NCBI GenBank assembly: GCA_020536535.1
Contig: JAHLWZ010000916.1
Location: 1-47,880, forward strand
Direction: 5' to 3'
DNA: 47,880 nt
From: Pelomyxa schiedti
Lineage: Eukaryota; Protista; Evosea
In this document: positions 4,905-41,370 of the stretch, in pieces
Position numbering within the stretch: the first letter of the stretch is position 1
How the letters are laid out: the number at the start of each line of letters is the position of its first letter
Position numbers and translations under genes: made by a program
Notes under the pieces: model-generated
Told to the model about the DNA's origin: nothing
The model's database searches: none
What the model saw: only the letters and a program-made list of their open reading frames with translations

Positions 4905-6266
4905 ATGTCGCGTACCAACCAACAAGAGACGCAGGTTCGTGCGATGTACGCCAAGGACCAGTTCGTGACCCTCGCGTGGGGCGCAATTGTGGGTGCTCGT
5001 CGTCCGATTTCTCGCGGTGATGGCGTGAACGAGAGGCACCGCAGTTGCTTTTTGAGTGTGATTCCAATTGGGATGTTGGTTGAGTTCATTGGCAAGAGGT
5101 GGATAATGAGGAAGGAGAGGGACATCAACGTCACTTTCTCACCTCAGGGTGGTGCTGGTGCTGCTGATGAGGGTGATGAGTGGGGGATGCTACCAGAGTT
5201 ACCCAGCAACTACGGCGAATGTGATAAGTTGCAATTTGTGGTGTCATGCACACTGGGTGTGATAACATGCAGCGTCGACCGCATGCTCATCGACCTGGAG
5301 CCAAAGAGCTTTGGTGGCAAAATCGGAGGTGGGAACGAAGTCAGGTGCACGGTGACTAACTCAGCTGGCGACTATAGGATCCATGTGCTTCATCCACGTG
5401 ATAGGTCACTGTTGATCGGCTCGGCACATGACGCGCCGCTGATGTGCTGGAATGGGACGTGGATTGTGGTTGGTCAGCATGACGAGAAGAAGTTGTATGT
5501 GTGGAGCTCAGTGTTATCAAGGGGGCCACCTGTCAAGGTGATCGATTTGCCGTTGTTGGAGACTGCTGTTTCAATGAGGTTCTTTGGCCCAACTGAGTAT
5601 GACTGCCACTCTGATGATGTAGAAATTATCTTCACTCAAAGGAAACCCAACAACCAGTTATACGTGTGTGTCACACACCTGAACATCAGAAGTGTTGTGG
5701 ATCCCGCTGGAATTCCACCTTCATCTTTCCTGGAAAGTGCAGCACTTCCTGATGGTATTGACACAAGGAACCTCAGCCGGCCACTTGTCAACAGGCAAGA
5801 GAGAAGTTACTTCTTCCCTTTCAGCTTGGGCACTGAGCAGAGACTGCTTCACCTGCGCACAGGGAATGCATTCACGTGGCTTCCAGACAGCCGGGGTCTC
5901 ACTGTGGCACCAGTTGATGATACCCACATTGCTGTCACTGATGACAGCAGTGCCACCACTGTTTTCTCGCTCTCGGACCTATCACGCAGTGGAACGCAAC
6001 AGCAACATCTTGCACTAAAGCCTACGTGTGTTCACCCACACTCAATTGGAACCACACAGGTGACTGTTGGTTGTGGATTGGTTGTCTTCAACTCCATCGC
6101 TCCAGAAGGCCCTCCGGCACAAATCAGTACTGTGGGTGGGAGGATTGGCGGCTCACAGCATGACTTTGTGGATGCATCCACTGGGTCATTGTTGTTAACT
6201 GTCAAATTCCCAAACGGCTTGCTGATGATCCCAGGTGAAGTCAAGTCTGATGGACTCTTGCCTTAG
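4905..6266 (+). CDS. Intronless uncharacterised family protein, copy A1 (YAKDQFVTLAWG box plus probable beta-propeller)
   Basis: Uninterrupted ORF, first ATG at 4905; clear paralogy with 6335-7687 and 9294-10805 (shared IGKRWxMRKERD, CWNxTWIVV, FFGPTEY, VDDTHIA, DAxTGSLL). Confidence 0.85.
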   Translation: MSRTNQQETQVRAMYAKDQFVTLAWGAIVGARRPISRGDGVNERHRSCFLSVIPIGMLVEFIGKRWIMRKERDINVTFSPQGGAGAADEGDEWGMLPELPSNYGECDKLQFVVSCTLGVITCSVDRMLIDLEPKSFGGKIGGGNEVRCTVTNSAGDYRIHVLHPRDRSLLIGSAHDAPLMCWNGTWIVVGQHDEKKLYVWSSVLSRGPPVKVIDLPLLETAVSMRFFGPTEYDCHSDDVEIIFTQRKPNNQLYVCVTHLNIRSVVDPAGIPPSSFLESAALPDGIDTRNLSRPLVNRQERSYFFPFSLGTEQRLLHLRTGNAFTWLPDSRGLTVAPVDDTHIAVTDDSSATTVFSLSDLSRSGTQQQHLALKPTCVHPHSIGTTQVTVGCGLVVFNSIAPEGPPAQISTVGGRIGGSQHDFVDASTGSLLLTVKFPNGLLMIPGEVKSDGLLP

Positions 6267-6334
6267 TAATTACAGCCTTTCCTTCCATGAACACATCAAA
6301 AAAAAACCCCGTTTCTTTGAAACAAGCATCAAAA

Positions 6335-7687
6335 ATGTCGGGTGATACCGAAGAGACCGAGGTAGTTAGCGCGGTGTACGCCAAGGACCAGTTCGTGACC
6401 CTCGCGTGGGGCGCGATAATGGGTTATCGTCCTCTTTCTCGCAGTGACAGCGAAATTTGTGCATCCCCAACCGACGACGCGACCGACCACGGCGGGGACG
6501 AGAGGCACCGCAGTTGCTTTTTGAGCATAATTCCAATTGGGATGTTGGTTGAGCTCATTGGCAAGAGGTGGATAATGAGGAAGGAGAGGGACATCAACGT
6601 CACTTTCTCACCTCAGAGTGGCCCTGGTGGTGTTGATGATGGTGACGATGAGGTCTCAGGCCTCGGAGATTGTGATCGGTTGCACTTCGCGGTGTCATGC
6701 ACACTGGGTGTGATAGAATGCAAGGTCGACCACATCGTTTTGGGACCAGGAAGAAAGAGCTTTGGGGGCAAAATCGGAGGTGGGAACGAAGTCAGGTGCA
6801 CGTTGAAGCCTTCTTCTGGCTACTACAGGGTGCATGTGCTCTATCCACGTGACATGGCACTACTTCAGGGATCAGCGCGAGTTGCACCGCTGATGTGCTG
6901 GAATGGTACATGGATTGTGGTGTTACGCACTGTTCGAGATGAGAAGAAGTTGCATGTGTGGAGGTCAGAGAGCCCAAGTGTAGAATTTGCAGGAGTTATT
7001 GATTTGCCATTGCAGGGGTCAGCTGTTTCAATGAGGTTCTTTGGCCCAACTGAGTATGACTGCCACTCTGATGATGTTGAAATTATATTGAGTCAAACCA
7101 AACCCACCAATCAGGAACACGTGTGTGTCACACACTTGAACATCAGAAGTGCTGTGGATCATGCTGATCCTCCTTATTTGTCTTTCCTTGAAGGTGCAGC
7201 ACTTCCTGAGGGCTTCGACACAAGGAACCTCAGCCAGCCACTTGTCAACAGGCAAGAGAGAAGTTACTTCTTCCCTTTCAGCTTGGGCACTGAGCAGAGA
7301 CTGCTTCATCTGCACACAGGGAATGTAATCACGTGGCTTGCAGGCAGCCAGGGTCTCACCGTTGCCACAGTTGATGATACCCACATTGCCACAACCTCCG
7401 AGGCCACCACCTTTGTTTTCTCACTCTCAGACTTATTGTGTGGATGCGGGCAACAGACACATCCAGCCCAACCGATCAGTGTTCACCCACACCCAATTGG
7501 AACCGCACAGGTGACTGTTGGTTGTGGCTTGGTTACCACCAGCTCCTTCGCCCAAGTCGGTAGAATTGGAACAGCTTCGTCACGGCACGGCTTTGTTGAT
7601 GCCTCCACTGGGTCGTTGTTGTTATCACTCAAATTCCCAAACAGAAAGACAATGATCACAGGGGCAATTAGCCCAGATGTGCTTTGA
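6335..7687 (+). CDS. Intronless uncharacterised family protein, copy A2 (tandem paralog of A1)
   Basis: 466-aa ORF (ATG at 6287 or 6335; 6335 matches the A1 start position) sharing long identical nucleotide tracts with A1. Confidence 0.85.
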   Translation: MSGDTEETEVVSAVYAKDQFVTLAWGAIMGYRPLSRSDSEICASPTDDATDHGGDERHRSCFLSIIPIGMLVELIGKRWIMRKERDINVTFSPQSGPGGVDDGDDEVSGLGDCDRLHFAVSCTLGVIECKVDHIVLGPGRKSFGGKIGGGNEVRCTLKPSSGYYRVHVLYPRDMALLQGSARVAPLMCWNGTWIVVLRTVRDEKKLHVWRSESPSVEFAGVIDLPLQGSAVSMRFFGPTEYDCHSDDVEIILSQTKPTNQEHVCVTHLNIRSAVDHADPPYLSFLEGAALPEGFDTRNLSQPLVNRQERSYFFPFSLGTEQRLLHLHTGNVITWLAGSQGLTVATVDDTHIATTSEATTFVFSLSDLLCGCGQQTHPAQPISVHPHPIGTAQVTVGCGLVTTSSFAQVGRIGTASSRHGFVDASTGSLLLSLKFPNRKTMITGAISPDVL

Positions 7688-7899
7688 AAGTTCTTGTGTC
7701 TTGTGTGTTCCTTTGCTAAATCTTTTTCCGTGGTGTGTGAGAAGTTATATACTTGAATTCCAATGCAGGCTGATGGATTACTGTGATGATCTTATGCAGA
7801 CTGCAGCGGTGATTGATTCCCACACCAACCACTTCTCTTCAATCCACTTTTCAGAAAACAATGCTTATTCATTAGTAATTTGCCACTTTTTACCATCCG

Positions 7900-9060
7900 T
7901 CACATATGAGAAATTGTAAGAGGCCAGTCCACAGGACCAATCCACCTCACAATTTCCACATGGAAGATTGGAGATACAGTGTGCACCTCATACACTGTGA
8001 CCCCACTGTATCCAACAAGGTAAATGAATCCATCTTCAATCTGCAGATACCTCCCACACTCAGGCAGTGTGACCACTCTCACCATCCTGGTCTCAACAGA
8101 GGAGCAATCCCAAATCTGGTACGACCTCCTGTCGACGACCTCGTAGACACAGAATGTGGACTGGCTCAGCTGCGTGGTTTTCACCACTGTATCCCAAAAA
8201 CTACCAATTTCCCTCACCAACCCAGTGCATTCCTCCAACTCCATCACACTGTACTTTCTCTTTGAGTAATGAAGTCTCACTGCAACAACAAAGACACGGC
8301 TCCCACCATTCCTCCTCATTAGCAGTGCCGACTTCAACTCCACCGTTTCTCCTTGTTTCACTGGAAGCACACAAGTCGTGGAACTGCAGATATCCAGCGA
8401 AGAAGTGGCCACAGAGTGCTCCACATCAACAACCACACAAACAACAGTGGGCCCAGAACCATAGTTGCCAACAAATAACATTGCCATTTGGGCTGGCTCC
8501 CTTGGGTCGAAGCACATGCAGCCAATCTCCAGGTTCATCCCACAATACTGCGGAACAGGCAAATCCCACACACAAGGGCCACCCGGTTTCCTTGCTGCAA
8601 TCATCAGCAATCCATGTTCCCCACCCCTATGCACATGTCCCAGCCACTGGCTGTTTGCAGTCATTACCTTGGATGAAAATGATTCTTCTCCATCAAGTTG
8701 CTTTTTCATGCACAGGAAGGTGATCCCACACAGTGGTGACAGCCCAAACAAGAGGAACCCACTCTCCCACCGTGGTCGCTTCAGGCGCCTGAGCTTCACG
8801 GCAGCAACCCTCTCAGTCAGAAGCACAGCAAGTGTGTCCCACATGAAACACACCAGTGGACCTTGTGATGCCAACAACCTCACTGATGATGATGGTGAAT
8901 GAAGGCCAACAAGGAACACCATCAATTGAGACCACACGGCTGGGCTGGTTGACCTCAACAAATCATACCGGCGGAAGTTGCGGGCCAACGGGCAACTCGT
9001 CACTCTGAGACCACACCCGTCATGCGGGTTAGTGAAATCCCAATTGTGGGTTGTTGTCAT
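7900..9060 (-). CDS. Intronless divergent member of the same superfamily (SQLMVFLVGLHSPSSSVRLL box; beta-rich C-terminus)
   Basis: Long open frame, first in-frame ATG at 9060; motifs GLSPLCGI, TANSQWLG and SQSTFCV align by eye with family motifs VSxTLGV, NxxWIV and DDxHF/DDTF. Start uncertain. Confidence 0.7.
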   Translation of the reverse strand: MTTTHNWDFTNPHDGCGLRVTSCPLARNFRRYDLLRSTSPAVWSQLMVFLVGLHSPSSSVRLLASQGPLVCFMWDTLAVLLTERVAAVKLRRLKRPRWESGFLLFGLSPLCGITFLCMKKQLDGEESFSSKVMTANSQWLGHVHRGGEHGLLMIAARKPGGPCVWDLPVPQYCGMNLEIGCMCFDPREPAQMAMLFVGNYGSGPTVVCVVVDVEHSVATSSLDICSSTTCVLPVKQGETVELKSALLMRRNGGSRVFVVAVRLHYSKRKYSVMELEECTGLVREIGSFWDTVVKTTQLSQSTFCVYEVVDRRSYQIWDCSSVETRMVRVVTLPECGRYLQIEDGFIYLVGYSGVTVYEVHTVSPIFHVEIVRWIGPVDWPLTISHM

Positions 9061-9293
9061 ACAAGTTACGACGAGAAAGGTAGATGGTTTTGCGAGAGGA
9101 ATTTTCACCGAAATCAAATCCAACAATTCTCTGGTCCACCTGTGTGGGGTGTAGTCACACACTGGACAAGACCTCCAGAGAGACACTGTGCCACCTCAGG
9201 CCATCTCAGTACAGCTTGTTATGGGTGCAAGCACAAATCCACAAGACAACTGATTCATCAAAACGAAGTTTTTAGTGTGAGTCACAATTTTGG

Positions 9294-10805
9294 ATGTGGA
9301 CCACACGACAACTGCACACCCTAACGTCCGATTTTGAGCTGGTGCGGCAACCGTTTTATGCCAAGGACCAGTTTGTTTCAGTGGCGTGGGGTGCGGTTAT
9401 GGGAACCCGACGCCCCACCAACCCCCCGACGCCGGCGGAGGGACAACAAGTCGACGGTGTCGCCGCCACCATCACCACCACCGCAGCCAGCTGTTGTTTC
9501 CCGCTGAGTGCGATTCCAAGTTGGCTGTTGGTCGAGTGCATAGGCAAGAGGTGGGTGATGAGGAAGGAGAGGGACATCGCTGTCACGTTCTCGTCGAGGC
9601 CCCCCGCTGATGCTGATGACGCCGACGACGCCGCCACCTCCTTGCCCATAATGTTGCTGGGGGGGAACGGCGACGAGCAAAAGTTGCATTTCGTGCTGTC
9701 ATCCACTCTGGGGGTTCTGGTGTTCCAGTGGAAGCCAGGGTCCATGCTCGGCCCGAGGCTTCCTGCCATGGGCGAGATTGGAGATAACGCCATTGAGGTC
9801 AGGTGTCATGCATCGGCACTTCCGGGTCCGTACAAGCTGTACGTTGTTGACCCAAAGTTCGAACACAAATTCACCTCGCGGTGGGAGCTACTTCGTGGAA
9901 ACGGGAATGAGGAGCCCCTGGTGTGCTGGAACAGCACGTGGATTGTCGTGGGCCAACAGCGGGAAAGGAAGCTGCATGTGTGGAGGTCACAGTTCCCAAA
10001 TCAGCCACCTGTGAAGGTCTTTGACTGGGAGTTGCTGAGGTCAGGTGTTTCAATGAAGTTCTTTGGCCCAACTGAATACCAGACCAGCTGCGATGATATC
10101 GAAATCATCTTCATGAAGGGAAGTCCCCCTGAAGGGATACTGTGTGTTGCACACTTGAACGTCAGAAGTGCTGTGGAGTCTCCGGAATCTCAACTTCTCA
10201 TACCACCTTCGTTGATGTTCTTCCGAAGTTCCGCGCTTCCTGAGGGCCTCGAAATGGGGAATCTCAGCCGGCCACTTGTCGCCAGGCCAGAGAGGAATTT
10301 CTTCTTCCCGTTCAATCTGGGACCTCAGCATAAGCTTCTCAATCTTCACACAGGTAAGGCCTTCACGTGGCTGGAGGACAGCAGCAATGGGCTTATTTCA
10401 GTCAGAGCGGTTGATGATACCCACATTGCGGTCACTTATGACAGCAATTCCACCACCTCTGTGTTCTCCCTCTCTGACCTGGCCGCCCATGGCACAGCAG
10501 CCCCACAGCCGCAGCAGGAGCTTCCACCAACGTGTGTGCACAGGCACCAGCCAGGGACCATTCATGTGGCTGTTGGCTGTGGGATTGTAGTGGCCAGCAG
10601 GATAAACCACTCGCGGAGCGTGGCACCGCAGCCGCCACCAGGCAAGAAGATACTGCCACCATACACCAGGAACCACTGGGCGTTCCACATAGCATCACAG
10701 CATGACTTTTCCGATGCAGCAACTGGCTCCCTGCTGTTCTCTCTCAAGTACAACAACAAGGTGCTCCTGCCTCACGAGATCACCTCCACCCCCTTCATCA
10801 ACTAA
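9294..10805 (+). CDS. Intronless uncharacterised family protein, copy A3
   Basis: 503-aa ORF with YAKDQFVSVAWG, IGKRWVMRKERD, CWNSTWIVV, FFGPTEY, VDDTHIAV and DAATGSLL. Confidence 0.85.
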   Translation: MWTTRQLHTLTSDFELVRQPFYAKDQFVSVAWGAVMGTRRPTNPPTPAEGQQVDGVAATITTTAASCCFPLSAIPSWLLVECIGKRWVMRKERDIAVTFSSRPPADADDADDAATSLPIMLLGGNGDEQKLHFVLSSTLGVLVFQWKPGSMLGPRLPAMGEIGDNAIEVRCHASALPGPYKLYVVDPKFEHKFTSRWELLRGNGNEEPLVCWNSTWIVVGQQRERKLHVWRSQFPNQPPVKVFDWELLRSGVSMKFFGPTEYQTSCDDIEIIFMKGSPPEGILCVAHLNVRSAVESPESQLLIPPSLMFFRSSALPEGLEMGNLSRPLVARPERNFFFPFNLGPQHKLLNLHTGKAFTWLEDSSNGLISVRAVDDTHIAVTYDSNSTTSVFSLSDLAAHGTAAPQPQQELPPTCVHRHQPGTIHVAVGCGIVVASRINHSRSVAPQPPPGKKILPPYTRNHWAFHIASQHDFSDAATGSLLFSLKYNNKVLLPHEITSTPFIN

Positions 10806-10859
10806 CCTCGACAACGCAAACAAAAACAACATTCTGCTCTTCCTTACTTAGTAGCTCCA

Positions 10860-13349
10860 ATGGACGGCGAGGAGTCCCCGGCAGCAACTGCGTTGTCGAC
10901 AACAACTGCCACCACGACGACCACGAGCGCGGCGGCGCAGAAGGAGACGGGCACGGGCACGGGCACGGGCACTGGGGCGTGGTTCGACGTGTCGCGGGAG
11001 GCGCCGCGGTTCGCGGGGGAGCAGAGCGCGTTCGAGTTCCAGCACCGGCTGGTGGACGCGGCGAGCGGGTCGGCCGTGAGCCGCGTGATCAACGCCGGGC
11101 GGGGGAACCCAAATTTCCTGCTGACAACTGTCAGGGACGCATTCGCCCAGCTGCTTTTGTTCGCGACGTATGTTGTTGCTGTCCCGCGGGTTCATTATTA
11201 TGGGATCGGGGTGGTGTGGGTGTTCGGGAATATGGCTAGTATTATATTTATACATAACGGTTTATTCTATGGAGTAATTTTTGAACAGGTTTGTTGCGGA
11301 ATCAGGGGAAGGCCTCCCGAGGGGACTAAAAGTCAGGCCAGATAAAAGGGGGATTGCAAAGAAACTGCAGGATTGGCTGCACAAAAATAGTTCCTCCAAT
11401 GGTTCCGCATTCCTAAGCAGTGCAATAAGCTTCATACATGAAGTATGTAGATGACTTCCCGTTATGTGTGACTTATCTCCAAAATGCAGAAGCTGGACTT
11501 GGAAGCTGACGATATTGTCTTCGAACTTTTTGATGCTGCTCAAGGTGACTATTATCCCGTTCCACCCCAAATGCTGCCAATGACGGAATTAATTGTATTT
11601 CTTTTACTTGAGACTTTCATTTTAAAACTTTTTTGCTAAGGTGAGACAATACTTGAACTCGGTCCTTTTTCACAATCACCCACCCCTTGGGACGTTTTCG
11701 TTATTTGCTACGGAAGGCGCAACAGCAGCAATGATTTACCTGTTTAATACTGTATGGCCCATCAAAAAAAAGATGTACACTAAGGGTGCTTCAAGCTAAA
11801 AGTGAACCACATATTGGCTCCAGGAGACAAAGTTGCCATCATAACTCCGATCTTCTCTCCTTACCTTGAAATCCCTGGGCTCTCGGAAAATGGATTCACT
11901 CCTGTGTACCTTGTGCGTACAGTTCATTGTCTTATTTTATTTTTCTAACATACTTCTCTTGAAGTCTTGTCAGGAGAGTCTCGGTTGGCAGCTGGGCCCT
12001 GAGGAAATCGCCAAACTTCGAGATACAAGCATCAAGGCATTGTTCGAAGTGAATCCAGGCAATCCCTCATCCTACTCTATGTCAAGGCAAACTGTGACCC
12101 AGATTGCACAAGTTATCAGAGAGCACAATCCAAACCTCATCGTTATCTCTGATTGGTTTCCTAGCCCTGAACAATTTCATTCTTCTTACTGTACTTCCCA
12201 GTGTTTATGCCAATTTCGTGGACGAGTTTCACTCTCTTCTGCATGAAGTAAACCCGTGGTTTGTTTATCTTTCTCTAAAATTCCTCAGATACCACAAAAT
12301 GTGATTGGTGTGTACTCTTTCAGCAAGTACTTTGGAGTTACTGGATGGAGGTAGAAATTTCTTGTTCTTCCCAGAGATTTTCACGCCGTTCACAGACTTG
12401 GTGTAGTTATGGTGCACCAAAATACTGTACTGGATACTATGATTGCACAACTTCCGGATGAACAAAGAAAGGTTCTTCTGCCTCCAGATTTAAAACCCAA
12501 GAGTTAACTCTTTAACCACAGCAACTTGCAGCACGGTATAGAATAATTACCCCAAAACCAGATAAACTCAGATTCATGGCCCGACTTCAGTCGGATTCTA
12601 GATGTTTGGCACTTGGCCACACGGCAGGGTACTTCAAACACTTTCATTTCTAAGTATAAAAGTTTTTAAATTCTGAAAAACCCATTAGTTTATCGGGACC
12701 ACAGCAAGCCATCATGGGCTTGTTTGCCCTGCACGAACTGCTGGATGAGAAATGTTCATACAGAAACGTAAATGCCTGCATTTTCTCCGTTTTGGACTGA
12801 CCCAGAAAAAAGGCCATTCTTGGCATCCTGAGAGAACGCTGGAATAACTTACACAAAGGCCTGGGCGTGACACCCCCCGACACGCCGTCATTGACGCGGT
12901 ATTACGCTCTACTAAATGTACTATCCCTATTATTCCCGCTCCCTCCTAACTTGTATTGCTTAGATAGCACATCTCGCCGAAGACAAACACGGGAAGGAAT
13001 TCGCCACCTGGCTTGTACAGCACACATCCCTATTTGGGTTCCTTAAGGTACATCTCTCTTCCTCCTTCTTTATCCAGCACTTCCGGCGTCCGGCATTCTT
13101 TTTCCCCGTTCGTTCCATCCTATTCTAACACACAAACAAAACACACAACAGTTGCTAGCAGAGCGGCACTTTACAGTGTGCCTGCCGGGTACCAAATTTG
13201 CCGGGCCTGACTGGTCAATACGAGTGTCAGTGGCCAACGTGTGTGCCGAGGAGTGCACGCAAATAGGCAGCAACATTGTGCAGCTGTTGGCATACATGGC
13301 ACACAGGCATGCCACCGACAGCCACTTACTGGGTGATTTGGATGAATAG
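10860..13349 (+). CDS. asdA: L-aspartate 4-(beta)-decarboxylase / bifunctional aspartate aminotransferase, bacterial AsdA/AspD type, about 13 introns
   Basis: Spliced motifs SAFEFQHRL, INAGRGNPNF, GDYYPVPPQML, FATEGATAAMIYLF, PIFSPYLEIP, VNPGNP, SDCVYANF, YSFSKYFGVTGWRLGV (PLP lysine), SDSRCLALGHTAGLSGPQQ and LPGTKFAGPDWSIRVSVAN follow the motif order of bacterial aspartate 4-decarboxylases. Confidence 0.92.
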
Positions 13350-13463
13350 AAAGAGATACAAGCAAAAACAATATCCACTGGCACAGTGATAACAATCAAA
13401 AAAGATTACATCCAAAAACTCTTTGTTACAACCTTTTTTTACAATGATATTGCCTGGTCTGTG

Positions 13464-16400
13464 TTATGTACTGCTCTCACAGAGGCGAGATTTCTCTGCC
13501 AGTTGCTGTTTCCGTGTAAGACAAGAAGGGAGTTATTTGGAGATGGCTAACCTCCGGGTTTGATATCACTGTGAAGTGCGAAATGTAGTTGGCGACGTCT
13601 TGCTGAGGCTTGAGCTTGTATTTGGCGGACTGGCATTGCTGGAACTTCTGCAGGATTGAGGCGATCATTCTCATCTTGTCCCAGTTGACAAGCTTGGCTG
13701 TTGCGTAATCGGGATTTCCATCTTTAAATCGAGTCAGTCGGTAAATGAGAATTGGAAATACTGACCTTCAATGAAAGTCAAATCTTTCATCCACAAAGCT
13801 ACTTTCATGTGAGTGGAAACTGATATTGCAAAGCACGCACCAATGTAAGGAACAACAGGAAGGCCACACTTTTGTAAGTTGGAACGGTAATTACTCATAT
13901 TGGGTTGTAAAACATCAGCTAGAAGATCCTCCAGGAATTGCTTCTCAATTTTTGGAACAGACTTGGAAGAGGTTAGTATTACAGAATTAGGGCGTGAGGG
14001 ATTGAACCTGCCAAGTTTTCTTCAATCGTGTAATTGCAAAAGAACCCAGACCCAACCCAATAGCGTAATATGCGGTCCAGTTGTTCATGTCTTTGCAGAG
14101 CTAAAAATCTGTAAGAGAAGGCCACATATTTGAGGATTACTTGGGCAATTTGTATAAAGCGTCTTACTGTGCAAACTCTCTGCTTCGTGTTTGGGGTAAG
14201 AACAATTTCTGTTGATACCCACTGTGACACCTTTTTGTACAAGTTACACAGGGTGGAGGGGAAGGAGAGCTTTACAAAGTTGGTGTGAGTAATCATCTTG
14301 CATATGTTTGGGGACTTTCTCAGCCTTTCGGACTCATCCTTACTGTTCCACCCTTGGCGCATAAATTCACAAGTGGAGATTGCGAGAAATATTTGCGACT
14401 CCAATAATGTTAGTTGCCTAGCAACCTCCAGTGGGTGTAAGTCAGTGAATTCCGGGCGCTAGAAGGGGACTGAGAGGAGAACACAGAGTTTAGTGGCATA
14501 CCTGAGACTTGGGTCCAATGGGTTTGGGCCAGTCCGTTTTACTGTGCTGCCGCGAAGAAAAGGAATACAGTGTTGGAGCATCAGAAAATCGGCAAGATGT
14601 GGAAACCACAGGTGAACTTTGAAGGGCTAAGGAAACCGTAAGGGAGTAGCGGTTCGGGTCAGTTGTAGTAGCAACAGGGTCCCGCTGTTGCATCAGTGAT
14701 CTGTGATGCTGTTGTCTCGACAGCCTCCCAGTTGCCAAAGGCGCAGAAATAGAAAGATTGTCAAGTGTCTTCGAAAGGGAAGCAGAAATTGCAGTATTAT
14801 CTACTGTCGTCAAAGGAATCGGAGTGCAAGCTGACAGGGGTGCAGGCAAACGAGGAGAGGGCTCTGGAGAGGCAGAATGACCTCTGGATCTGCTATCTAC
14901 TGAAGTGCTTTTATCTTTGCACTTTATGACACCTCGTTCCATCATTGAATTGCCCAAAGCAATAACTTGTTCACGGTTGAGAAAAGGGAAATACTCTATA
15001 GTATAGCGGATAATTTCGTCGGCTGACTGAGGGTTGGTGCAAGAAGAAAAGGAACTCGCTCCTTACCATAGAAAGCTTTCTTGATGGTTTTTATTGTCCT
15101 CTTCTTGCTACTAACAATTGGACTCAAAAGCCATAATGTTTCCACGACTTCCTGGAAATTTTTGCTTTCCACTGCCATACAAGAGGGAGACAGTGGAACT
15201 GATTGCCCTTTGACAACCTAAAGAGTTGGTGAGTGCATTAAAAACAAAAAATTCCGTACTATTGTTGCTACAATATTTTTCTGTAAACATTCCAGGATGC
15301 AAGTTCCCCATTCAGCATGCTTTGGATACAGTTGAGATCGAATAAACTCTCTCAACAAATCCCCGATTTGGAGGATACTGGAATGGCTCTCTGCCCAGCG
15401 TTTGATGATATCGAGTACCCTAATTTCAATGTGAGAATCATGATTTCTTTCTTAGGTGTCCTTGGTCACACCTGGTTTGTATGATCTCTATTGGAGAACT
15501 ATACCTGAAATAAGGTTAAGAAAGTAGAGTATGGAAAAGATTGAGATCAAACTGATTGACTAAGTGAAGAAACAAGTCCGAGGATTCCATGAAATATTTG
15601 TGTGTAAGTAACAGAGTGTCTATATCAGTCACGCCTTTAGGATATTTGAGTTCGAGAATTAATTCCCTAGCTAGGGACTGTACGTGGACATGACACGCAA
15701 AGGTGAGCAATAAAATCCTCGGCAGTGCAAGAGTGTTCAGCATCACTATATTGGGTGGGAAAAAAAGAGTGAGGAAGTCTGGAATGTACGGTTTGATTTC
15801 CTACTAGGTGTGAGTGCAATAATTTTGTAGCCAAGGTACATACAGGACAGATAGGCTCCTCAGTGTTAATGACTGATGCACCACCATTACCGGTTGCAGG
15901 GCCAGAAATAGCTACACCCCTCTCTAGATTCTTGAGAAGTAAACATAAGTAACTTTCGGCGCTTACCCATGAGGCAGATAGCGTATTCCCAATGCGGAAG
16001 CGGGGGCTCGCTCATGGCCCTTTGTCTTCCCCCGCATTCCTCGTCATCACTACCAACACCCACACTCTCACAGCCCCTGCTAGCCACCACGGTTTTCTTC
16101 ATTTCGATTGCGCCGTAGCTGTACTGCCTCCATATTCCCCGTCCACCCTCTTCCTCATTCGCAGCAGCAGTGCCGTTGTTCAGCGGGTTTCCCCTCGTCG
16201 TCGTTGGCGGTGACGGTGGGTCGTTACACTGCGCTATGCCGTTGTTGATGCAACACGCAGCAAAAGCGGCTGTGCGAGAATACGCGTTGTGTGTAGACGT
16301 TGTAGTAGTGGAGAGTGTCTGGCCGTAGAGATGCACGGTTTTGCGCTTCTTCGGCTGCATCACAGACGTCACTGAACGCGACAAAGATCCGCTCGTTCCT

Positions 16401-16482
16401 ATCACCGCTGCATTGTGGCACAGTACAAGAGTCAGATCGGATTAAAAAAGAAATAACTGGTTGATAACAAACCAGTTGTCAT
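13464..16482 (-). CDS. Ras guanine nucleotide exchange factor (REM plus CDC25 domain), multi-exon
   Basis: REM motif DIDTLLLTHKYFMESSDLF; CDC25 motifs HPLEVARQLTLLESQIF, VSQWVSTEIV, PVVPYIG, KDLTFIEDGNPD and VNWDKMRMIA; ATG 16482 inferred via a short first exon; stop at 13464. Confidence 0.9.
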
Positions 16483-16757
16483 CACGGTATCTCTTCGAGG
16501 CCGCCTTTTTTTTTTTTGTTTTTTGTGTTGTGTTTTGTGTTGTGTTGGTGCATTTTTGCGTCACGTCTTCGTCGTTTCGTGTCAGGGCTTTCGTTGGGTC
16601 TATCAATCACATGTGCGGTTATGCGAAAATCAACTTCGGCCCCTTTGATGCCGCTGAAAAATCCTCAATGAAGGAACAACCTTCCTTCGCCTTTTCATAA
16701 CGGAATGAACTCCACTAAATCGAGCAAGATGATCGATTTGTGTTGTTGAGAGTGAGG

Positions 16758-18002
16758 TCAACTTTGGCACAATGAGTGGAGGCGAGGAGCTGATATTTTG
16801 GTGTGAGGGACGAAGGAAATCACCTCAGTGCCTGTCATTGGGTGATAAACCTTGACTGTGTTCTCCTGCTCCAAACAGCATAGAAAGCCCTGGCAGCAAC
16901 AAAGTAATTGATAAGGGCAGGACTTTGGTTGGCAGTTCAGAACTTTACAAGGATTCTTTGCGTCGGTGACCGAGTACACACTCACTGATGTGTCACTGTC
17001 ATGCACAACAAAGTGGGAGTCATCAAGCTTCACTGGGAGCCTCATGAATTTATTCAGCACTGTGTTGGAAGGAAGACTCACCAAGCAGTATTCCACACTG
17101 CCACTCCTTTTATTACCAGTTGTATTGGTAGTCACAGTTGCTGGCAGTATTATTGCACTTGTTACTGGGTGCCACATTGGCCCCTTGCCAACCTCAAAAG
17201 GGGTCGTTATGTGATTCACAGGATTAATCACACCACCACTCACAAAAGTGTTTTCCAAGTCTATCTGGAAAAACCTTGTTTTACCCTTCTTTTTTTGTAC
17301 AACGGAGAGCTCATCCCCACCTCTAATTAGCCCCTTCTCATGAAACAAGCAAGTGAACTCCACATGCTGCAATCCAGATAGTGGCACATACTTGCTCCAC
17401 AAAGGAGGACAAGGAGCCATCCCGGCCTCATCCCCATCGTCACTCCTCCTCATCCTCTCCAAAATGAACCCATGGCGCTCACGGAAGCACACAATCCACT
17501 TGTGATTAGCGATGATATCCTTGTCATAGGCCCTCATGACCCCAGGGAAGTCAGCCACCCCCCACAGCGTCCTCGTGGCGTCGTTTCCCTCCACCCTCTG
17601 CACCTCGAATCCACGCCTCTGCTCGTAGACGAGGGTGCGGGGGTCCGCCCACACCCCGGTCCCTATTTCCCTCGTGCACAGCGACGCGGACACGAGCCCC
17701 AGGGTGGGCGAGACCACGAGGAACAGGCTCGCGTGGGCCCGCGGGTCCGCCCCGGGGACGGCGAAGTCCGAGTGGGCCGACACCACCAGGCGGTGGGCCG
17801 GGGCGAGGACCCAGCGCGGGCCGATGTGGTCCGAGAGCGAGCAGCGGGTGAGGAGCCGGGCGGGGCTCCGCGACCCGCAGCCCGCGGGGAGCAGGGCCGC
17901 CGCAGCGAGCGCGACGAACTGGGCCCGCGCGTCGATGTACCCAGAGAGGCCCTCGATGTCCCGGAGACGGGCGGCCGGCTGTGGCGAGTGCCTGGACGCC
18001 AT
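16758..18002 (-). CDS. Intronless uncharacterised family protein, copy B1 (ARAQFVAL...CGSRSPA box)
   Basis: 414-aa ORF with DARAQFVALAAA, GCGSRSPARLL, IGPRWVL, VVSPTLGLV, ANHKWIV, DDSHFVV and HPMTGTEVI. Confidence 0.82.
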   Translation of the reverse strand: MASRHSPQPAARLRDIEGLSGYIDARAQFVALAAAALLPAGCGSRSPARLLTRCSLSDHIGPRWVLAPAHRLVVSAHSDFAVPGADPRAHASLFLVVSPTLGLVSASLCTREIGTGVWADPRTLVYEQRRGFEVQRVEGNDATRTLWGVADFPGVMRAYDKDIIANHKWIVCFRERHGFILERMRRSDDGDEAGMAPCPPLWSKYVPLSGLQHVEFTCLFHEKGLIRGGDELSVVQKKKGKTRFFQIDLENTFVSGGVINPVNHITTPFEVGKGPMWHPVTSAIILPATVTTNTTGNKRSGSVEYCLVSLPSNTVLNKFMRLPVKLDDSHFVVHDSDTSVSVYSVTDAKNPCKVLNCQPKSCPYQLLCCCQGFLCCLEQENTVKVYHPMTGTEVISFVPHTKISAPRLHSLCQS

Positions 18003-18238
18003 CTACAAAGACCAATCAATCTCTGCCAATACTCTCCTGCGTGCCAGCACAGCTCGGAGAATCGAGAGTGTGATGGGAGACCGCAGTGATTGTGTGATGG
18101 GAGATCAGAGTCAGTTCCAGGTTGGGGTGACCTTGATTGGTCACTGGGTTGGGTGGGACCCATAAGACCACCAGTCGCTCCAAGAGATTTTCCATTGGCA
18201 GGTATTAGGCGAACACTGGCTTTTTTTTTCAACATCGA

Positions 18239-19738
18239 ATGCAGGGTCGCAAGAACGACTGCGATAACACGTATGGTCGTTGTGTGAGTTCAGACGGGCA
18301 AGTGTCCCTGGAACCAGTGCTCAGTGCCAAGTCACAGTTCGTTGCTGGCATCGGTCTGCACTGGCACCCTCGCTGCGGCTCACGCAGCCCAGCACACCTG
18401 CTTCCCACACAAGTCATATCGCACTTCATCGGGTCGCGATGGGTGATGGCCCCTCGCGCGGTCGTCAGTTTCATGGCCACCGGGAGATTGTGTGTTGGTG
18501 GCGGTGGCAGTGGCAGTGTATCGTACATGGTTCTGTGCTATGTGTCACACACAGGGGGCGTGGTCACTGGTCACGTCTGGAACGCCGAGGGAGACGAGTG
18601 GCGCCACGTTGTGGGATTGGTGGGTGACATCGGTGCCGGAATCCGCAGCAACGAGTGCGGTGGTGGGAATGAGTGTGATGGCGATGTTGACGTCGATGCC
18701 GTGGATGATGTTGATGACTCGGTGTGGGATGAAATGTGGGAGGACTCTGGGGCTTGGAGGAGTAATGCCGAACCAATCAAGAGAGTTGAGAGTGGGAGCA
18801 GGGTGGTGCAGCATGGGCCGTGGGTCGTTGGGGCCCTGAGGAGGGTGGGGCTGCGTGTGAGTGACATGGCTGCGGCGCCGAGGATGATAAATGACCTGCC
18901 GCTCGAGGCCTTGCACATTGGAGGTGTGTTCTGGGGGAAGCTGAGTGTGTGCTGCAATCGGAAGTGGATTGCCGCCGGGATGGTGGCCTCGGATTCTCTG
19001 GAGGTGTTTAGGGTTGCTGCTGGAAGTGGAGGCGCGATGGAGCTGAGTGCTCATGTCAGATTGCGGTGCCCATGTTTCCTGGCAATGAAAATGCGGGGCC
19101 CAGACACACTCGTTTTGTTGCTGCACAACGGTGGGCAGTTGCCATCATCGAATCTCAGGGAAACAGAAGGTGTCACACTGCTTTTTGTTGACCTGGAAGC
19201 AAGTGTTTCTGCGAAGGAAGTGAGGAGTGTCACGAGTATCAGTTTCCCCATGGAATCAGCAGAAGTAACAGAGCTGGTTTCGTGCAGTACCCTGGAGGAT
19301 TCCATCTGCTGGTCTCAGGAAGGGGATCCCTTCATTGTAGTTTACTGGCCAGAGAGTGGCAAGCTCGATGTGAGATCAAAGGATAGCTCTGTATCAGTGT
19401 TTTACCTTCCACGGGGTGATTTTAGTCGCCTGAGTGATGACACATTCTGCATATGGGTCAGCACAAAGAGGCGAGCTCATGTGTACAACATTACAGCGCC
19501 TTCAAAACCCATGTTCAAATTCTCTTACCATGGCAGAGGTGCATTTGCCACGGCATTCAGTGAGTTTGTTGTGTGCAAGGAGGTTGTTTCTGACCACAGA
19601 AGCACCACCAGCAATGGTCGGTCCATGCACCACTTTTATGACCCAGAAACAGGAGGAAAGGTCATGTCACTTGTGAGCAAAGTGGCCGAGGTGGTTTCAC
19701 TGCTCCCTGTTTCTGGTTGTTGTTCTTTTTCTATTTAA
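18239..19738 (+). CDS. Intronless uncharacterised family protein, copy B2 (AKSQFVAG...HPRCGSRSPA box)
   Basis: 499-aa ORF with SAKSQFVAG, HPRCGSRSPAHLLP, IGSRWVM, YVSHTGGVV, CNRKWIA, DDTFCI and DPETGGKVM; divergent from B1 across a 236-nt spacer. Confidence 0.82.
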   Translation: MQGRKNDCDNTYGRCVSSDGQVSLEPVLSAKSQFVAGIGLHWHPRCGSRSPAHLLPTQVISHFIGSRWVMAPRAVVSFMATGRLCVGGGGSGSVSYMVLCYVSHTGGVVTGHVWNAEGDEWRHVVGLVGDIGAGIRSNECGGGNECDGDVDVDAVDDVDDSVWDEMWEDSGAWRSNAEPIKRVESGSRVVQHGPWVVGALRRVGLRVSDMAAAPRMINDLPLEALHIGGVFWGKLSVCCNRKWIAAGMVASDSLEVFRVAAGSGGAMELSAHVRLRCPCFLAMKMRGPDTLVLLLHNGGQLPSSNLRETEGVTLLFVDLEASVSAKEVRSVTSISFPMESAEVTELVSCSTLEDSICWSQEGDPFIVVYWPESGKLDVRSKDSSVSVFYLPRGDFSRLSDDTFCIWVSTKRRAHVYNITAPSKPMFKFSYHGRGAFATAFSEFVVCKEVVSDHRSTTSNGRSMHHFYDPETGGKVMSLVSKVAEVVSLLPVSGCCSFSI

Positions 19739-19819
19739 GTTCTATACGAGGCACAACTTTGCTTCGTGGAAGTGTTTTCAAGTTTTTCATCAGAATTATC
19801 AGGTAGTTGCGTTACGTAC

Positions 19820-22245
19820 ATGATGCATCGTCACAGTGGCGAAGCCGAGAGAAGTGTCACCACTTCCCTGCTACACCACCACCCCTCAGTATGCCCAACA
19901 ACAACCCCCTGCTGCCCCTGCCGCCCCTGCGCCCTCGCCCGCGCCGTGTGGATCTCGCGCCTGGTTTGGGACCACGTTGCGTCCCCCGGGTGGCTCGACG
20001 GGGGCCTCGGCGAGCGCCGCGCCCTGGGCCCGGCCAGGCACCTGTGCCGCCCCCACCGCGGGCTGTGGGCCGCCGCCGAGGCCCTGTTCCCGCTGCGGGG
20101 CCTGCTGTGCCGCCGCGCCCTGCGCCTGGTCACCCGCGAGGGCGGCCGCACCGCCGGGACCTACCGCTCCCTCGCCGCCGCGGCGTCGGCGCCCAGCCCC
20201 GCGGGCGTCGCGTGGATCGTGGGCCACAGGAACGAGGGGGAAAAAAAAAACACAACACCCAGGGCCAGGGTGGGGGGCAAAAGCTATTCGCAGGCAGAGG
20301 CGGAGGACCAGGAAGGGGGGGTGATGATGGGAGGCATGGATTGCGGCGGCGGCGGGTGTATGGGGGAATGTGGGGATGGTGTTGTTGTTAAGGAGGTGGC
20401 GGCCGTGTTGCTTGGGTTGTGCTGTGGTGGGCACGTGGAGGAGGCGAGGAAGCTCATCGGGGATGGTGTTTCTCAGGGGTGCTGCACCGATGGCAATGCT
20501 AGGAGCAGTGGTGGGGCACAGCTAGCGATTGAGTGTGCGTTGCCGTCGCTGTGGGACGGGAGGTGTGTTGTGAGGTGGAAGAATGCTGCGTGGTGTTTGG
20601 GTGGGGGCGATGCGGCGGCGGGAAGAATCAAGCTAAGGGAGAAGGTGATCGAGTACGTTCGGGGTTCGTGTGGCCCACTCAATTTCATGTGGTGGGTGGG
20701 CGGCGAGAACCACGTTGCAGTTCTGAGGTGGCTGGTGTCTGTGCTTGGAATCGAGAGGAATTCAGCACCTTGGATTCTGTATCAGCAACTGCCTTCTGCT
20801 GTTCATGGTGGTAAGGTGGAAGTTGTGGAGTGGCTGTTTGGTGAGTATGACTTCACTGGCCTCCCAGATTTCGTTGTTTCCGAGCTAGCCTCTTTGTGTG
20901 CTCAAAGTCCCTCACCCAGCAGCATCAGGTGGTGGGTGAAAAAATTTCCAGCCCTGACTGCCACCTTGGATGACTACAGTGATTACATCCTGAAAAATAA
21001 ATGGAGCTCAGTGGAAGACTGCAAATGGGTAGTATCCAATTTTTGCGGTAATGAGGATGGGCCTGCTGGGTTTATGAAGAGTATTGAGGCAATTAAGTGG
21101 GTACTGACAACATTTAACATTGATGCAAGGGCAGATACATTAAATAAGCTCTGCGAATCTCTTGGAAATGTATCACTTACTGAGTGGCTTGTCTCAGAAA
21201 AGCACTTTGCCATCCCAGATGCAGCAACGTTTGTGTCTGCATGTGCAGCACCAAGGAAACGAGGATCCTCACTTGCAAGGTGGCTTTCAACGAGGGTGAC
21301 CCTCTCTCAGGCTGATATAATCACGTCTCTGACTGCAGCACTCCGATCTGGCAATATCGAGGTTGCAGATTTTCTGGCTGATAGGTTCCACGTGATGGAT
21401 GTAGTTAACTCCAGTGCTGAGATTGCCGGAACTACCCTTGTTGGTGTGTGCAATGACTACCGTGGAGTGGAAGGGCTGAAGTGGTTTATTCAGCACCTCT
21501 CAGAGCTTGGAATTATCAAGGAGAGCTCGATACAAGGGGCATTTGCTGCAGCACTTCAGTTCTCTGATAGGTTGGCTCTTGCTCTGTTGTTGGATACCTT
21601 CACTGAATTTCATCCACAATGTTATCCCCCCCTATTCAAGAAACTTGTGATAAAATTCATGACAGTGGGGCTGGATACTCTGAAACGCCTCCTTGTGTTT
21701 ACTCCAGCCTCTTCCCTGCCCTTACCCACAACAGAGTTTGTGGCCAGGTGTTTGACTTCAGGGAAATTCCAGCCATACTCCAGCAAAAGTGTCAAATGGG
21801 TCATCCAGCAGTTCCATTTGCAGTATACCCACATCAACGCCAAAAACAACTCCCTACTGTTCAAGCTGTTTAACAGAAGGAAGAACAGGTGTGCTGAGTG
21901 GCTCATTGACTCATTCCACATCCCTTTCTCTGATGTGTGTGTTCTCCAAATCCTCAATTGAAAGCTAAAATACCACAGGTTGTTGAGATGACGAAGTGGT
22001 GCAGGGAAGACACGGCAATTGACCTGGCAGGCTGGCAGTTGCTTTTGAGGAAGTACCACGGCAACATCAACACAGAGGTGATTCACCAAACCCTGATGCC
22101 AATTGTGACAGTGTCACCACACATTGCACTCAACACTATTCACCATCATGGAATTACAGTAAGGGACATACAAGAATACTTCATAGGTGTTGACACTGAA
22201 TGCTCACCCACACAGCTATTATTATGGCTCGCAACGATTTCATAA
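19820..22245 (+). CDS. Degenerate ankyrin-like helical repeat protein; one intron near 21934-21979
   Basis: Long ORF with recurring GHVEEARKL, NHVAVLRWLV, GKVEVVEWLF, GNVSLTEWLV, GNIEVADFLA and GVEGLKWFI repeats; a GT..AG intron joins the 731-aa and 102-aa ORFs. Confidence 0.75.
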
Positions 22246-40000: not shown

Positions 40001-41247
40001 CGTCAACTGCCTTCCTGCCATGTATCACAAACCAAAAAAAAAAAAGTTGTTTGGAGGTCGAGACCAGTCTCTTCGGTAGTGCCGCCATATAACTTCTGCT
40101 AAATTTTCGACCTAATTTCTTTCAGTTAATACAATCGGAAACACTTGAATATACTAACCAGACACCAGGAAACAGCACTTTCCGAGTGTGGGAATGTGTA
40201 CACCCCAATAAAGTGGTCTACTCCACACACAGCAAGCAGGCACCTGAAGTGGCGTTACACGGCAGTTGATTTACCAATTCCATACTCATTCAGTGGAGTG
40301 ACAACCGGAGACCAACCTATTCCCGTGATTTTGTATGGGCTCTCCTCGAACTTTCTTGGCTTGAAAACGAAATCTATTTTTTTCGAGCAGTCAGGTCGTT
40401 GGTAAAGGCCAGGCCTGTACATACAAGGCTCCCCGCCCAGTTCCAAAAAGAAGCCGTTGCGCTTGATCGACGTCTCCAAAACCACGGGGCACTTCCCGTC
40501 CATGACATACACCCCCTCGTCGTTGAACACCCCGACCATGTTGCTGTCGCTCACCCGCACGCAGTCCCCCACGCACGAGCACCACCCGTACACCATCCCC
40601 ACCTGCTGCGCCCTGGCTCCCCACTCCCCGCCAACCCCGGCCCAGGCCCCACCAGCCCCTGTCCCTGTCCCTGCCCCGGCGCCCCCGCCGCCGCGTCCGG
40701 CGGCCCCGCGGTCCCCCCGCCCGCCGCGGGACAGGAGCCCCCCCGCGCCCATCCCAACCGCCCCGTCCCCATCCCCGTCGCCTTCGTCTTCGTCGTCGCC
40801 GCGGTAGTAGTCGCCCTCGCCGTCGCCATCTCCTTCTGCTGCTGCCTCGTTGTCGTCGGCAGCCCCCCCACCACCCCCGTTCTTATTCGTGGTGCATGGG
40901 CGCTTGGTCCCCGCCAGCGGCGATGTTGGTGGGAGTGCGGAGTCAGTCTCGGCGTCAGCACGCGTGTGGCCGCGGCCTCGCCCTCGGCCTCCCCTGGCGC
41001 GCCCCCCGCCGCGCATCGGGGATGCCACTGCTGGTAGTGCTGGTGGTGGTGGTGGTGTAGATGGGGGGGGTGGCTGGGGGGAAGCAGCGGGTGCGGACGA
41101 TGCCCTCCTCGTGGTACCAGTGGGTGTGCGCGGGGTTTTTGGTTTCGCCGCGGCGGCTGTTGATGTGGTCCTCCTTCTCTTGGGGGGGGTTGTGGGGGTA
41201 GCCTCGGGCGGCGGAGCCGATTCTTTGGGTGTCGCTTCGTCGGCCAT
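37017..41247 (-). CDS. GTF3C4: General transcription factor IIIC subunit 4-like (TFIIIC90/tau60): WD-like N-terminal region and C-terminal zf-TFIIIC zinc finger; multi-exon
   Basis: ITGIGWSP...CLLAV, AITTISWSP and LLAVGTGYGSVYLF propeller strands; C-terminal ETCPVC...CEKGHEF...RCMRT...CWVC...CPLCG pattern typical of zf-TFIIIC; RG-rich low-complexity N-terminus. Confidence 0.72.
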
Positions 41248-41370
41248 TTTGGTCTTCGTTGTTTGTTGTTTTGATGAAATGCCTGGGATCCAGGAGGACG
41301 TCGGTTCGAGACCGAGAGGGATGAATCATTTATTAGTTGGTCAGCATAAGGAACTAGCATAAGGTGTTAG

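Follow-up and report, generated by a model that had tools for sequence, protein, structure and literature searches.

A very large family of intron-free genes in Pelomyxa schiedti with a conserved N-terminal box ahead of a predicted seven-bladed beta-propeller

Introduction

Ubiquitin-ligase substrate receptors and other recognition repertoires combine a constant head with a variable propeller. In F-box/WD40 proteins such as Fbw7, beta-TrCP and Cdc4, a constant N-terminal helical module is combined with a propeller, and in DCAF12 a helix-loop-helix lies ahead of a seven-bladed propeller (PMC9929631). Here, a stretch of 47,880 nucleotides from the genome of the amoeba Pelomyxa schiedti (GenBank assembly GCA_020536535.1, contig JAHLWZ010000916.1, positions 1 to 47,880, forward strand), called the window from here on, was analysed for six open reading frames (ORFs), labelled A to F in their order along the contig, whose predicted products show a comparable layout. 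The genome of P. schiedti comprises 52.4 Mb in 5337 scaffolds and encodes 19,876 proteins, the number of introns per gene being 7.43 (PMC8887013). The six ORFs are real protein-coding genes without introns and belong to a single, very large P. schiedti family, of which a published description was not found in the open literature searched.

Six intron-free genes of one family

An earlier note, made from the letters of this DNA, had placed six intronless ORFs in the window and attributed to them an ordered set of motifs shared despite low overall identity. All six were recovered as uninterrupted, homologous frames belonging to three subfamilies. Genes A (4905-6266, forward strand, 453 amino acids), B (6335-7687, forward, 450 amino acids) and D (9294-10805, forward, 503 amino acids) were found by the family profile with E-values of 1.5e-100, ~1e-100 and ~1e-100, respectively, A being assigned to the D-type subfamily ('YAKDQF...GKRW') and B being a tandem copy of A with another in-frame ATG upstream, at 6287. 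Genes E (16758-18002, reverse strand, 414 amino acids) and F (18239-19738, forward, 499 amino acids) were found with E-values of 4e-62 and 1.5e-45, while gene C (7900-9060, reverse, 386 amino acids) represents a third subfamily. Since single open frames span the family profile from end to end, no introns are required in any of the six.

Full-length identities of 42 to 64% were observed by BLASTP within the group formed by A, B and D (64% for A and B, 47% for A and D, 42% for the third pair), while E and F shared the N-terminal 53 residues alone (51% identity, E-value of 1e-7) and the remaining pairs, including all those with C, gave no significant BLASTP match. A profile built from 37 paralogues of D, from which E and F were excluded, found E at 7e-19 and F at 3e-14, and the reciprocal E-type profile found A, B and D at ~1e-30. 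Moreover, the alignment of D-type sequences (28) and that of E-type sequences (23) were matched by hhalign with a probability of 99.9% and an E-value of 5.7e-36 over 359 colinear columns, extending from the N-terminal conserved segment, hereafter the box, through the final motif. A box-only profile made from E-type copies, with A, B and D left out, also found these three proteins at ~1e-8. In particular, the box and the motifs VSxTLGV, NxxW[IV], DD[ST][HF] and DxxTG were present in that order in all six proteins, so that the common motif set proposed earlier was borne out and, through the profiles, homology was placed far beyond chance.

For gene C, paralogues were found on other contigs with identities of 69% (contig C1388), 57-67% (contig C257) and 47% (contig C388), all of which begin at the methionine at 9060. 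The profile of this subfamily matched the E-type profile (hhalign probability of 97.4%, E-value of 1e-11) and, weakly, the D-type profile (20%). The box of C had been located by the earlier note at 'CGLRVTS', which proved to be wrong; the true box is VWSQLM...FMWDT, encoded at 8833-8937 on the reverse strand (residues 42-76), as placed by the subfamily alignment and motif mapping. In that alignment, more distant relatives of C (L069/L070) retain 'HRRCGSASPAR' after the 'WSQLM' helix, and the box of C was therefore assigned to this position, with its Cys-Gly loop (HPRCG) lost. The window thereby adds two divergent box types to the family, one with a loop insert (A, B and D) and one with loss of the Cys-Gly loop (C).

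Family size, taxonomic range and selection

An exhaustive HMMER search was carried out with a 53-sequence profile against 1.84 billion cluster representatives. A total of 1316 representatives were matched at E-values of 1e-3 or lower, 512 of them at 1e-10 or lower and 149 at 1e-30 or lower. Twenty matches were sampled from the best 150 of the 1316, and all 20 were single-member P. schiedti clusters annotated as 'hypothetical protein'. A word-based protein search, for which first D and later the 53-sequence profile served as the query, returned the window's own proteins alone and was uninformative. Copies were found on well over a hundred contigs of the P. schiedti genome, often in clusters, and many of the matched deposited models contained two to four copies each. 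Taking the 512 clusters matched at 1e-10 or lower over the 19,876 proteins, the family accounts for at least 2.5% of the predicted proteome. These counts uphold the proposal of a lineage-specific and hugely expanded family.

Ratios of nonsynonymous to synonymous substitution rates (dN/dS) ranged from 0.32 to 0.52 in eight paralogue pairs, with synonymous divergence (dS) of 0.4-1.3; the ratio was 0.52 for A and B, and 0.35-0.43 for C with its paralogues. Furthermore, stop codons appeared in only 6 of the 340 six-frame matches to four queries. The dN/dS values of 0.3-0.5 therefore indicate real genes. By the same values, describing the family as rapidly diversifying was an overstatement, as the windows with ratios above 1 were local and noisy.

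Predicted fold and the N-terminal box

Models of D and E were built with AlphaFold2 using family alignments. The model of D had a mean predicted local distance difference test score (pLDDT) of 82.5 and a predicted template modelling score (pTM) of 0.83, with helices at residues 23-36 and 76-88 followed by 28 strands, and that of E had a pLDDT of 76.9 and a pTM of 0.77, with helices at residues 25-37 and 53-66 followed by about 30 strands. In both models, a short strand, helix 1 (containing the QFVAL part), a loop, helix 2 (ending in IG-R/K-RWV) and seven four-stranded blades appeared in this order; besides the two main helices, the box of E has an additional four-residue turn. The loop of the box comprises 9 residues in E, while in A, B and D it is predicted to be disordered, with an insert of 20-40 residues.

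Foldseek searches of the PDB returned propellers exclusively, with E-values of about 1e-8. In a structure search independent of Foldseek (VIA), residues 67-402 of E matched seven-bladed propellers with Z-scores of 14-16, and a second structure search gave Z-scores of 10-12 to propellers for D. The structural matches of both proteins covered 250-320 aligned residues at 4-13% identity, and the structural neighbours in the ESM Atlas had template modelling (TM) scores of ~0.5. The best matches were the methylamine dehydrogenase heavy chain, prolyl-oligopeptidase propellers, PROPPINs, the propellers of DDB1 and SF3B3, and lectins; no propeller family was distinguished among the matches from Foldseek, VIA and the Atlas, which point to generic seven-bladed propellers. 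The beta-rich body had been taken for a propeller from its sequence, and the modelled strands together with the structure searches agree with this, giving a seven-bladed beta-propeller. The 'WD-like blade endings' that had been read in it did not hold: WD dipeptides averaged 0.75 per protein, 2 of 73 members contained WDx[RK], and Pfam WD40 was unmatched (a single sub-threshold WD40_2 match was found, at an E-value of 0.033). Moreover, no hydrophobic segment suggesting a signal peptide or a membrane anchor was evident. According to the models, the protein plan is thus predicted to be a short variable N-terminal tail, a box of about 45-65 residues and, directly after it, a non-WD40 seven-bladed propeller.

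The consensus of the box consists of helix 1 'A[RK]xQFVAL', the loop 'RCGxxSP' in the canonical type, and helix 2 ending in 'IG[RK]RWV'. Canonical boxes were located in E (17805-17930, 'RCGxxSP'; box profile E-value of 2e-28), whose propeller spans approximately 16776-17804, and in F (18326-18448, 'HPRCGSRSPA'; 2.4e-24). In the other subfamily, the box lies at 4950-5108 in A (residues 16-68, from motif mapping; box-only profile E-value of 1.2e-8), at 6380-6577 in B (residues 16-81, including the loop insert, from motif mapping and a profile match) and at 9360-9560 in D, followed there by the propeller at approximately 9564-10787. The box is the best-conserved segment of the family, with 2.0 bits per column vs. 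1.1-1.5 in the body. Among 23 aligned E-type boxes, A, Q, C, S and W were invariant, and R, G, L and G nearly so. In addition, the N-terminal 85 codons of the C subfamily showed dN/dS values of 0.20-0.25, compared to 0.40-0.42 in the body; because the N-terminal ratio was only some 50% of that in the remainder, with a dS that was no lower, the constraint on the box acts on the protein and not on the DNA.

Proposed role of the family

We favour, with a probability of roughly 0.55, a repertoire of soluble binding proteins. All members would use the conserved box to bind a single shared partner or to carry out a single shared task, and their propellers, which vary, would offer differing binding surfaces. 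Two points weigh against this proposal, namely that dN/dS did not clearly indicate diversifying selection in the propeller, and that the inspection of relatives covers the best 150 of the 1316 matches, so that weak distant relatives elsewhere are possible. The design is shared with recognition repertoires, so that identifying what the head binds would reveal a new adaptor system or else a new way of using propellers, in an amoeba with a biology dominated by obligate prokaryotic endosymbionts. Any role of the proteins in dealing with endosymbionts, prey or viruses is purely speculative. Even if no partner exists, the family would be a striking example of intronless genes expanding by birth and death in a genome that is very rich in introns.

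The box and known cullin-adaptor motifs

The proteins could instead be substrate receptors of cullin-RING ligases, with the box docking Skp1, Elongin B/C or, as the best fit in layout, DDB1, and the propeller picking the substrates, which was considered unlikely. It would account for a constant N-terminal helical module joined to a variable seven-bladed propeller, and the helix-loop-helix before the propeller is the layout of the DCAF proteins (PMC9929631); a DCAF12 propeller cluster also appeared among the Atlas structural neighbours, with a TM score of 0.49. Furthermore, Skp1 and many F-box genes are encoded in the genome, and Skp1-cullin-F-box (SCF) machinery therefore exists in P. schiedti.

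The sequence of the box, however, gives this no support. Neither the Pfam F-box (PF00646 / PF12937) nor SOCS_box nor WD40 matched at an E-value of 1 or lower in 53 members, and no F-box was found in the six window proteins. Across the whole genome, the F-box-like hidden Markov model (HMM) PF12937 matched more than 150 loci above the cut-off, mostly short exons of spliced genes, which indicates a large canonical F-box repertoire in P. schiedti; among the loci listed, for which the best candidates were scored, none lies on this contig. The box profile had no match among PDB sequences, and the best score of box look-alikes in the ESM Atlas, searched with language-model features, was 0.77, at noise level. 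The spacing from LP to W, read from the sequence, is 12 residues in D, much shorter than in an F-box, and the conserved BC-box pattern ([STP]Lxxx[CSA]xxx-hydrophobic) was absent from the box alignment when inspected by eye. The rarity of WDx[RK] and the generic character of the structural neighbours, headed by the methylamine dehydrogenase heavy chain, point in the same direction. The analogy of the box to an F-box or a SOCS/BC-box, drawn in the earlier note, was not supported, and the box is modelled as two helices that lead into blade 1 without a third helix or a linker. When P. schiedti Skp1 (P0151, residues 46-202) was co-folded with E, the score was 0.01, a value that speaks neither for nor against an interaction. 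The cullin-adaptor reading is thus only an analogy, without support for a link to F-box or SOCS proteins.

As a separate observation, at least five Skp1-like loci were found in P. schiedti, all interrupted by short introns (e.g. C832:64400-65600), and two deposited Skp1 proteins ('cytosolic glycoprotein FP21') have an N-terminal extension of about 45 residues rich in Thr, Ala and Pro.

Possible roles of the box as a cap or as a new docking module

It was likewise judged improbable that the box is an intramolecular cap or closure stabilising the propeller, and that the proteins are stand-alone ligand-binding (lectin-like) or enzyme-like propellers. The models lend themselves to such a reading, as the box joins the first strand without a linker, helix 1 follows a short strand in both of them, as in N-terminal 'velcro' closures, and the helices have a pLDDT as high as that of the blades, with whole-chain pTM values of 0.77-0.83. 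The best-conserved propeller motifs are also found in the first blades, beside the box, and the heavy chains of methylamine and aromatic-amine dehydrogenases are among the top structural neighbours, as are bacterial propeller lectins. However, an invariant, exposed-looking R-C-G-x-x-S-P loop, kept over hundreds of copies with propellers that are about 20% identical, is unexpected for a pure cap, the loop accepts inserts of 20-40 residues in A, B and D, and no catalytic motif of propeller enzymes was matched.

Also quite unlikely is a box that acts as a previously unknown docking module, plugging several hundred propellers into one hub, for example a cullin-RING ligase via DDB1 or a novel adaptor. 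The invariant RCGxxSP loop would then be a contact site or a regulatory (Ser-Pro) site, and few known repertoires dedicated to substrate reception or recognition would match the family in size, in a symbiont-packed anaerobic amoeba.

Loci, gene models and neighbouring ORFs

Genes A and B are arranged in tandem, while C and D, and E and F, form head-to-head pairs. The spacer between C and D (9061-9293, 233 bp) is, from its coordinates, a putative shared promoter region, and that between E and F (18003-18238) measures 236 bp. A six-frame search of the window with the family profiles recovered exactly these six genes, with neither additional copies nor relics.

In the public annotation, the family is hidden through the fusion of adjacent copies. 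The deposited model KAH3744501.1 (900 amino acids) joins A and B across the stop codon of A, and KAH3744507.1 (1305 amino acids) joins F to the following ORF, labelled G, with a small 5' exon and an intron placed in the spacer between E and F. Because all family members stop right after the last motif, both fusions appear to be gene-prediction artefacts.

ORF G itself (19766-21961, forward strand, 731 amino acids) adjoins F, and its only Pfam matches are weak ones to ankyrin. This ORF is part of another large family of intronless P. schiedti genes, for which over 60 copies of nearly full length (37-50% identity) and 602 first-look candidates were found, with nearly all frames intact. A box common to G and the six genes was considered and rejected, as the box profile found nothing in G with all filters off, and the N-terminus of G is unrelated.

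The family genes also contain long ORFs (150-205 amino acids) that are antisense or overlapping, at 8154-8723 and 17472-18089 on the forward strand and at 17663-18235 and 18545-19126 on the reverse strand. Comparable ORFs were also present in paralogous loci, and no Pfam family was matched where tested; they are probably by-products of composition. Elsewhere in the window, two overlapping long ORFs on the reverse strand (40255-41360) occupy a GC-rich stretch (0.55) of low-complexity sequence rich in Gly, Ala, Pro and Arg.

Origin and genomic setting

Genome-wide, A, B and D were mutual best matches, ahead of a 43% identical copy on contig C792, and they are therefore local tandem duplicates. 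The nearest relatives of C were on other contigs, yet this gene is located between B and D, and the relatives of E and F were on other contigs and distant. Both for the pair of A and B and for C with its 78% identical paralogue, DNA similarity ended at the ends of the coding sequence, a pattern that counts neither for nor against the spread by retroposition proposed in the earlier note. The G+C content of the family genes was 0.51-0.57, compared to 0.44-0.48 in the surrounding intron-rich DNA, and the observed/expected ratio of CpG was 0.60-0.72 in all of them except C, vs. 0.63-0.80 for the rest of the window. Gene C had a much lower CpG ratio than the other family genes (0.35). CpG depletion was discarded as a mark of the family for being weak, C alone standing out.

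Nothing in the composition, the flanking ORFs or the sampled matches pointed to a foreign source. That the copies are selfish or foreign DNA (a mobile element, retrocopies, or viral or bacterial remnants) with no cellular repertoire function is highly improbable, since the features that recall it, namely the lack of introns where the genome has 7.43 of them per gene (PMC8887013), the dispersal of the copies over many contigs besides clusters, the position of C, from another subfamily, within the array of A, B and D, and the second intronless expanded family (G) adjoining F, are opposed by purifying selection in all the tested pairs, frames that are almost always intact, the absence of transposase, reverse transcriptase, integrase and viral domains from nine flanking long ORFs, the interleaving of family genes with ordinary intron-rich host genes, a G+C content and CpG ratio that do not look foreign, and the lack of any non-Pelomyxa relative among the sampled matches.

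Comparison with known systems

The best structural matches to the Pelomyxa proteins were non-WD40 propellers (methylamine dehydrogenase heavy chain, prolyl-oligopeptidase, PROPPIN/Atg18 and PLL-type lectins), which are nevertheless devoid of an N-terminal box, and none of which is present in hundreds of copies in one genome. In SOCS/BC-box adaptors, which bind Elongin B/C, the BC-box and its Cul-box motif are usually C-terminal to the substrate-binding domain, whereas the Pelomyxa box is N-terminal. The F-box/WD40 proteins share with the Pelomyxa family a constant N-terminal helical module combined with a propeller; Fbw7 was among the Foldseek matches by virtue of its propeller, and F-box families have likewise undergone large lineage-specific expansions. 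However, their box, of roughly 45 residues, has three helices, binds Skp1 and is followed by a linker domain, compared to two helices with no linker in the Pelomyxa models, and their HMMs were unmatched.

Finally, the DCAF/DWD receptors of CUL4-DDB1 (DDB2, CSA and DCAF12), which bind DDB1 between its BPA and BPC propellers, share with the Pelomyxa family an N-terminal helix-loop-helix directly before a seven-bladed propeller, and both are multi-member families. There is no sequence similarity between them, the WD40 signature and WDxR being absent in the Pelomyxa proteins, and the DCAF/DWD receptors have no counterpart of the invariant RCGxxSP loop and number tens of copies, in contrast to hundreds in Pelomyxa. 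On the basis of the predicted models, and as an analogy in layout, the DCAF class would represent the nearest architectural parallel to this family.

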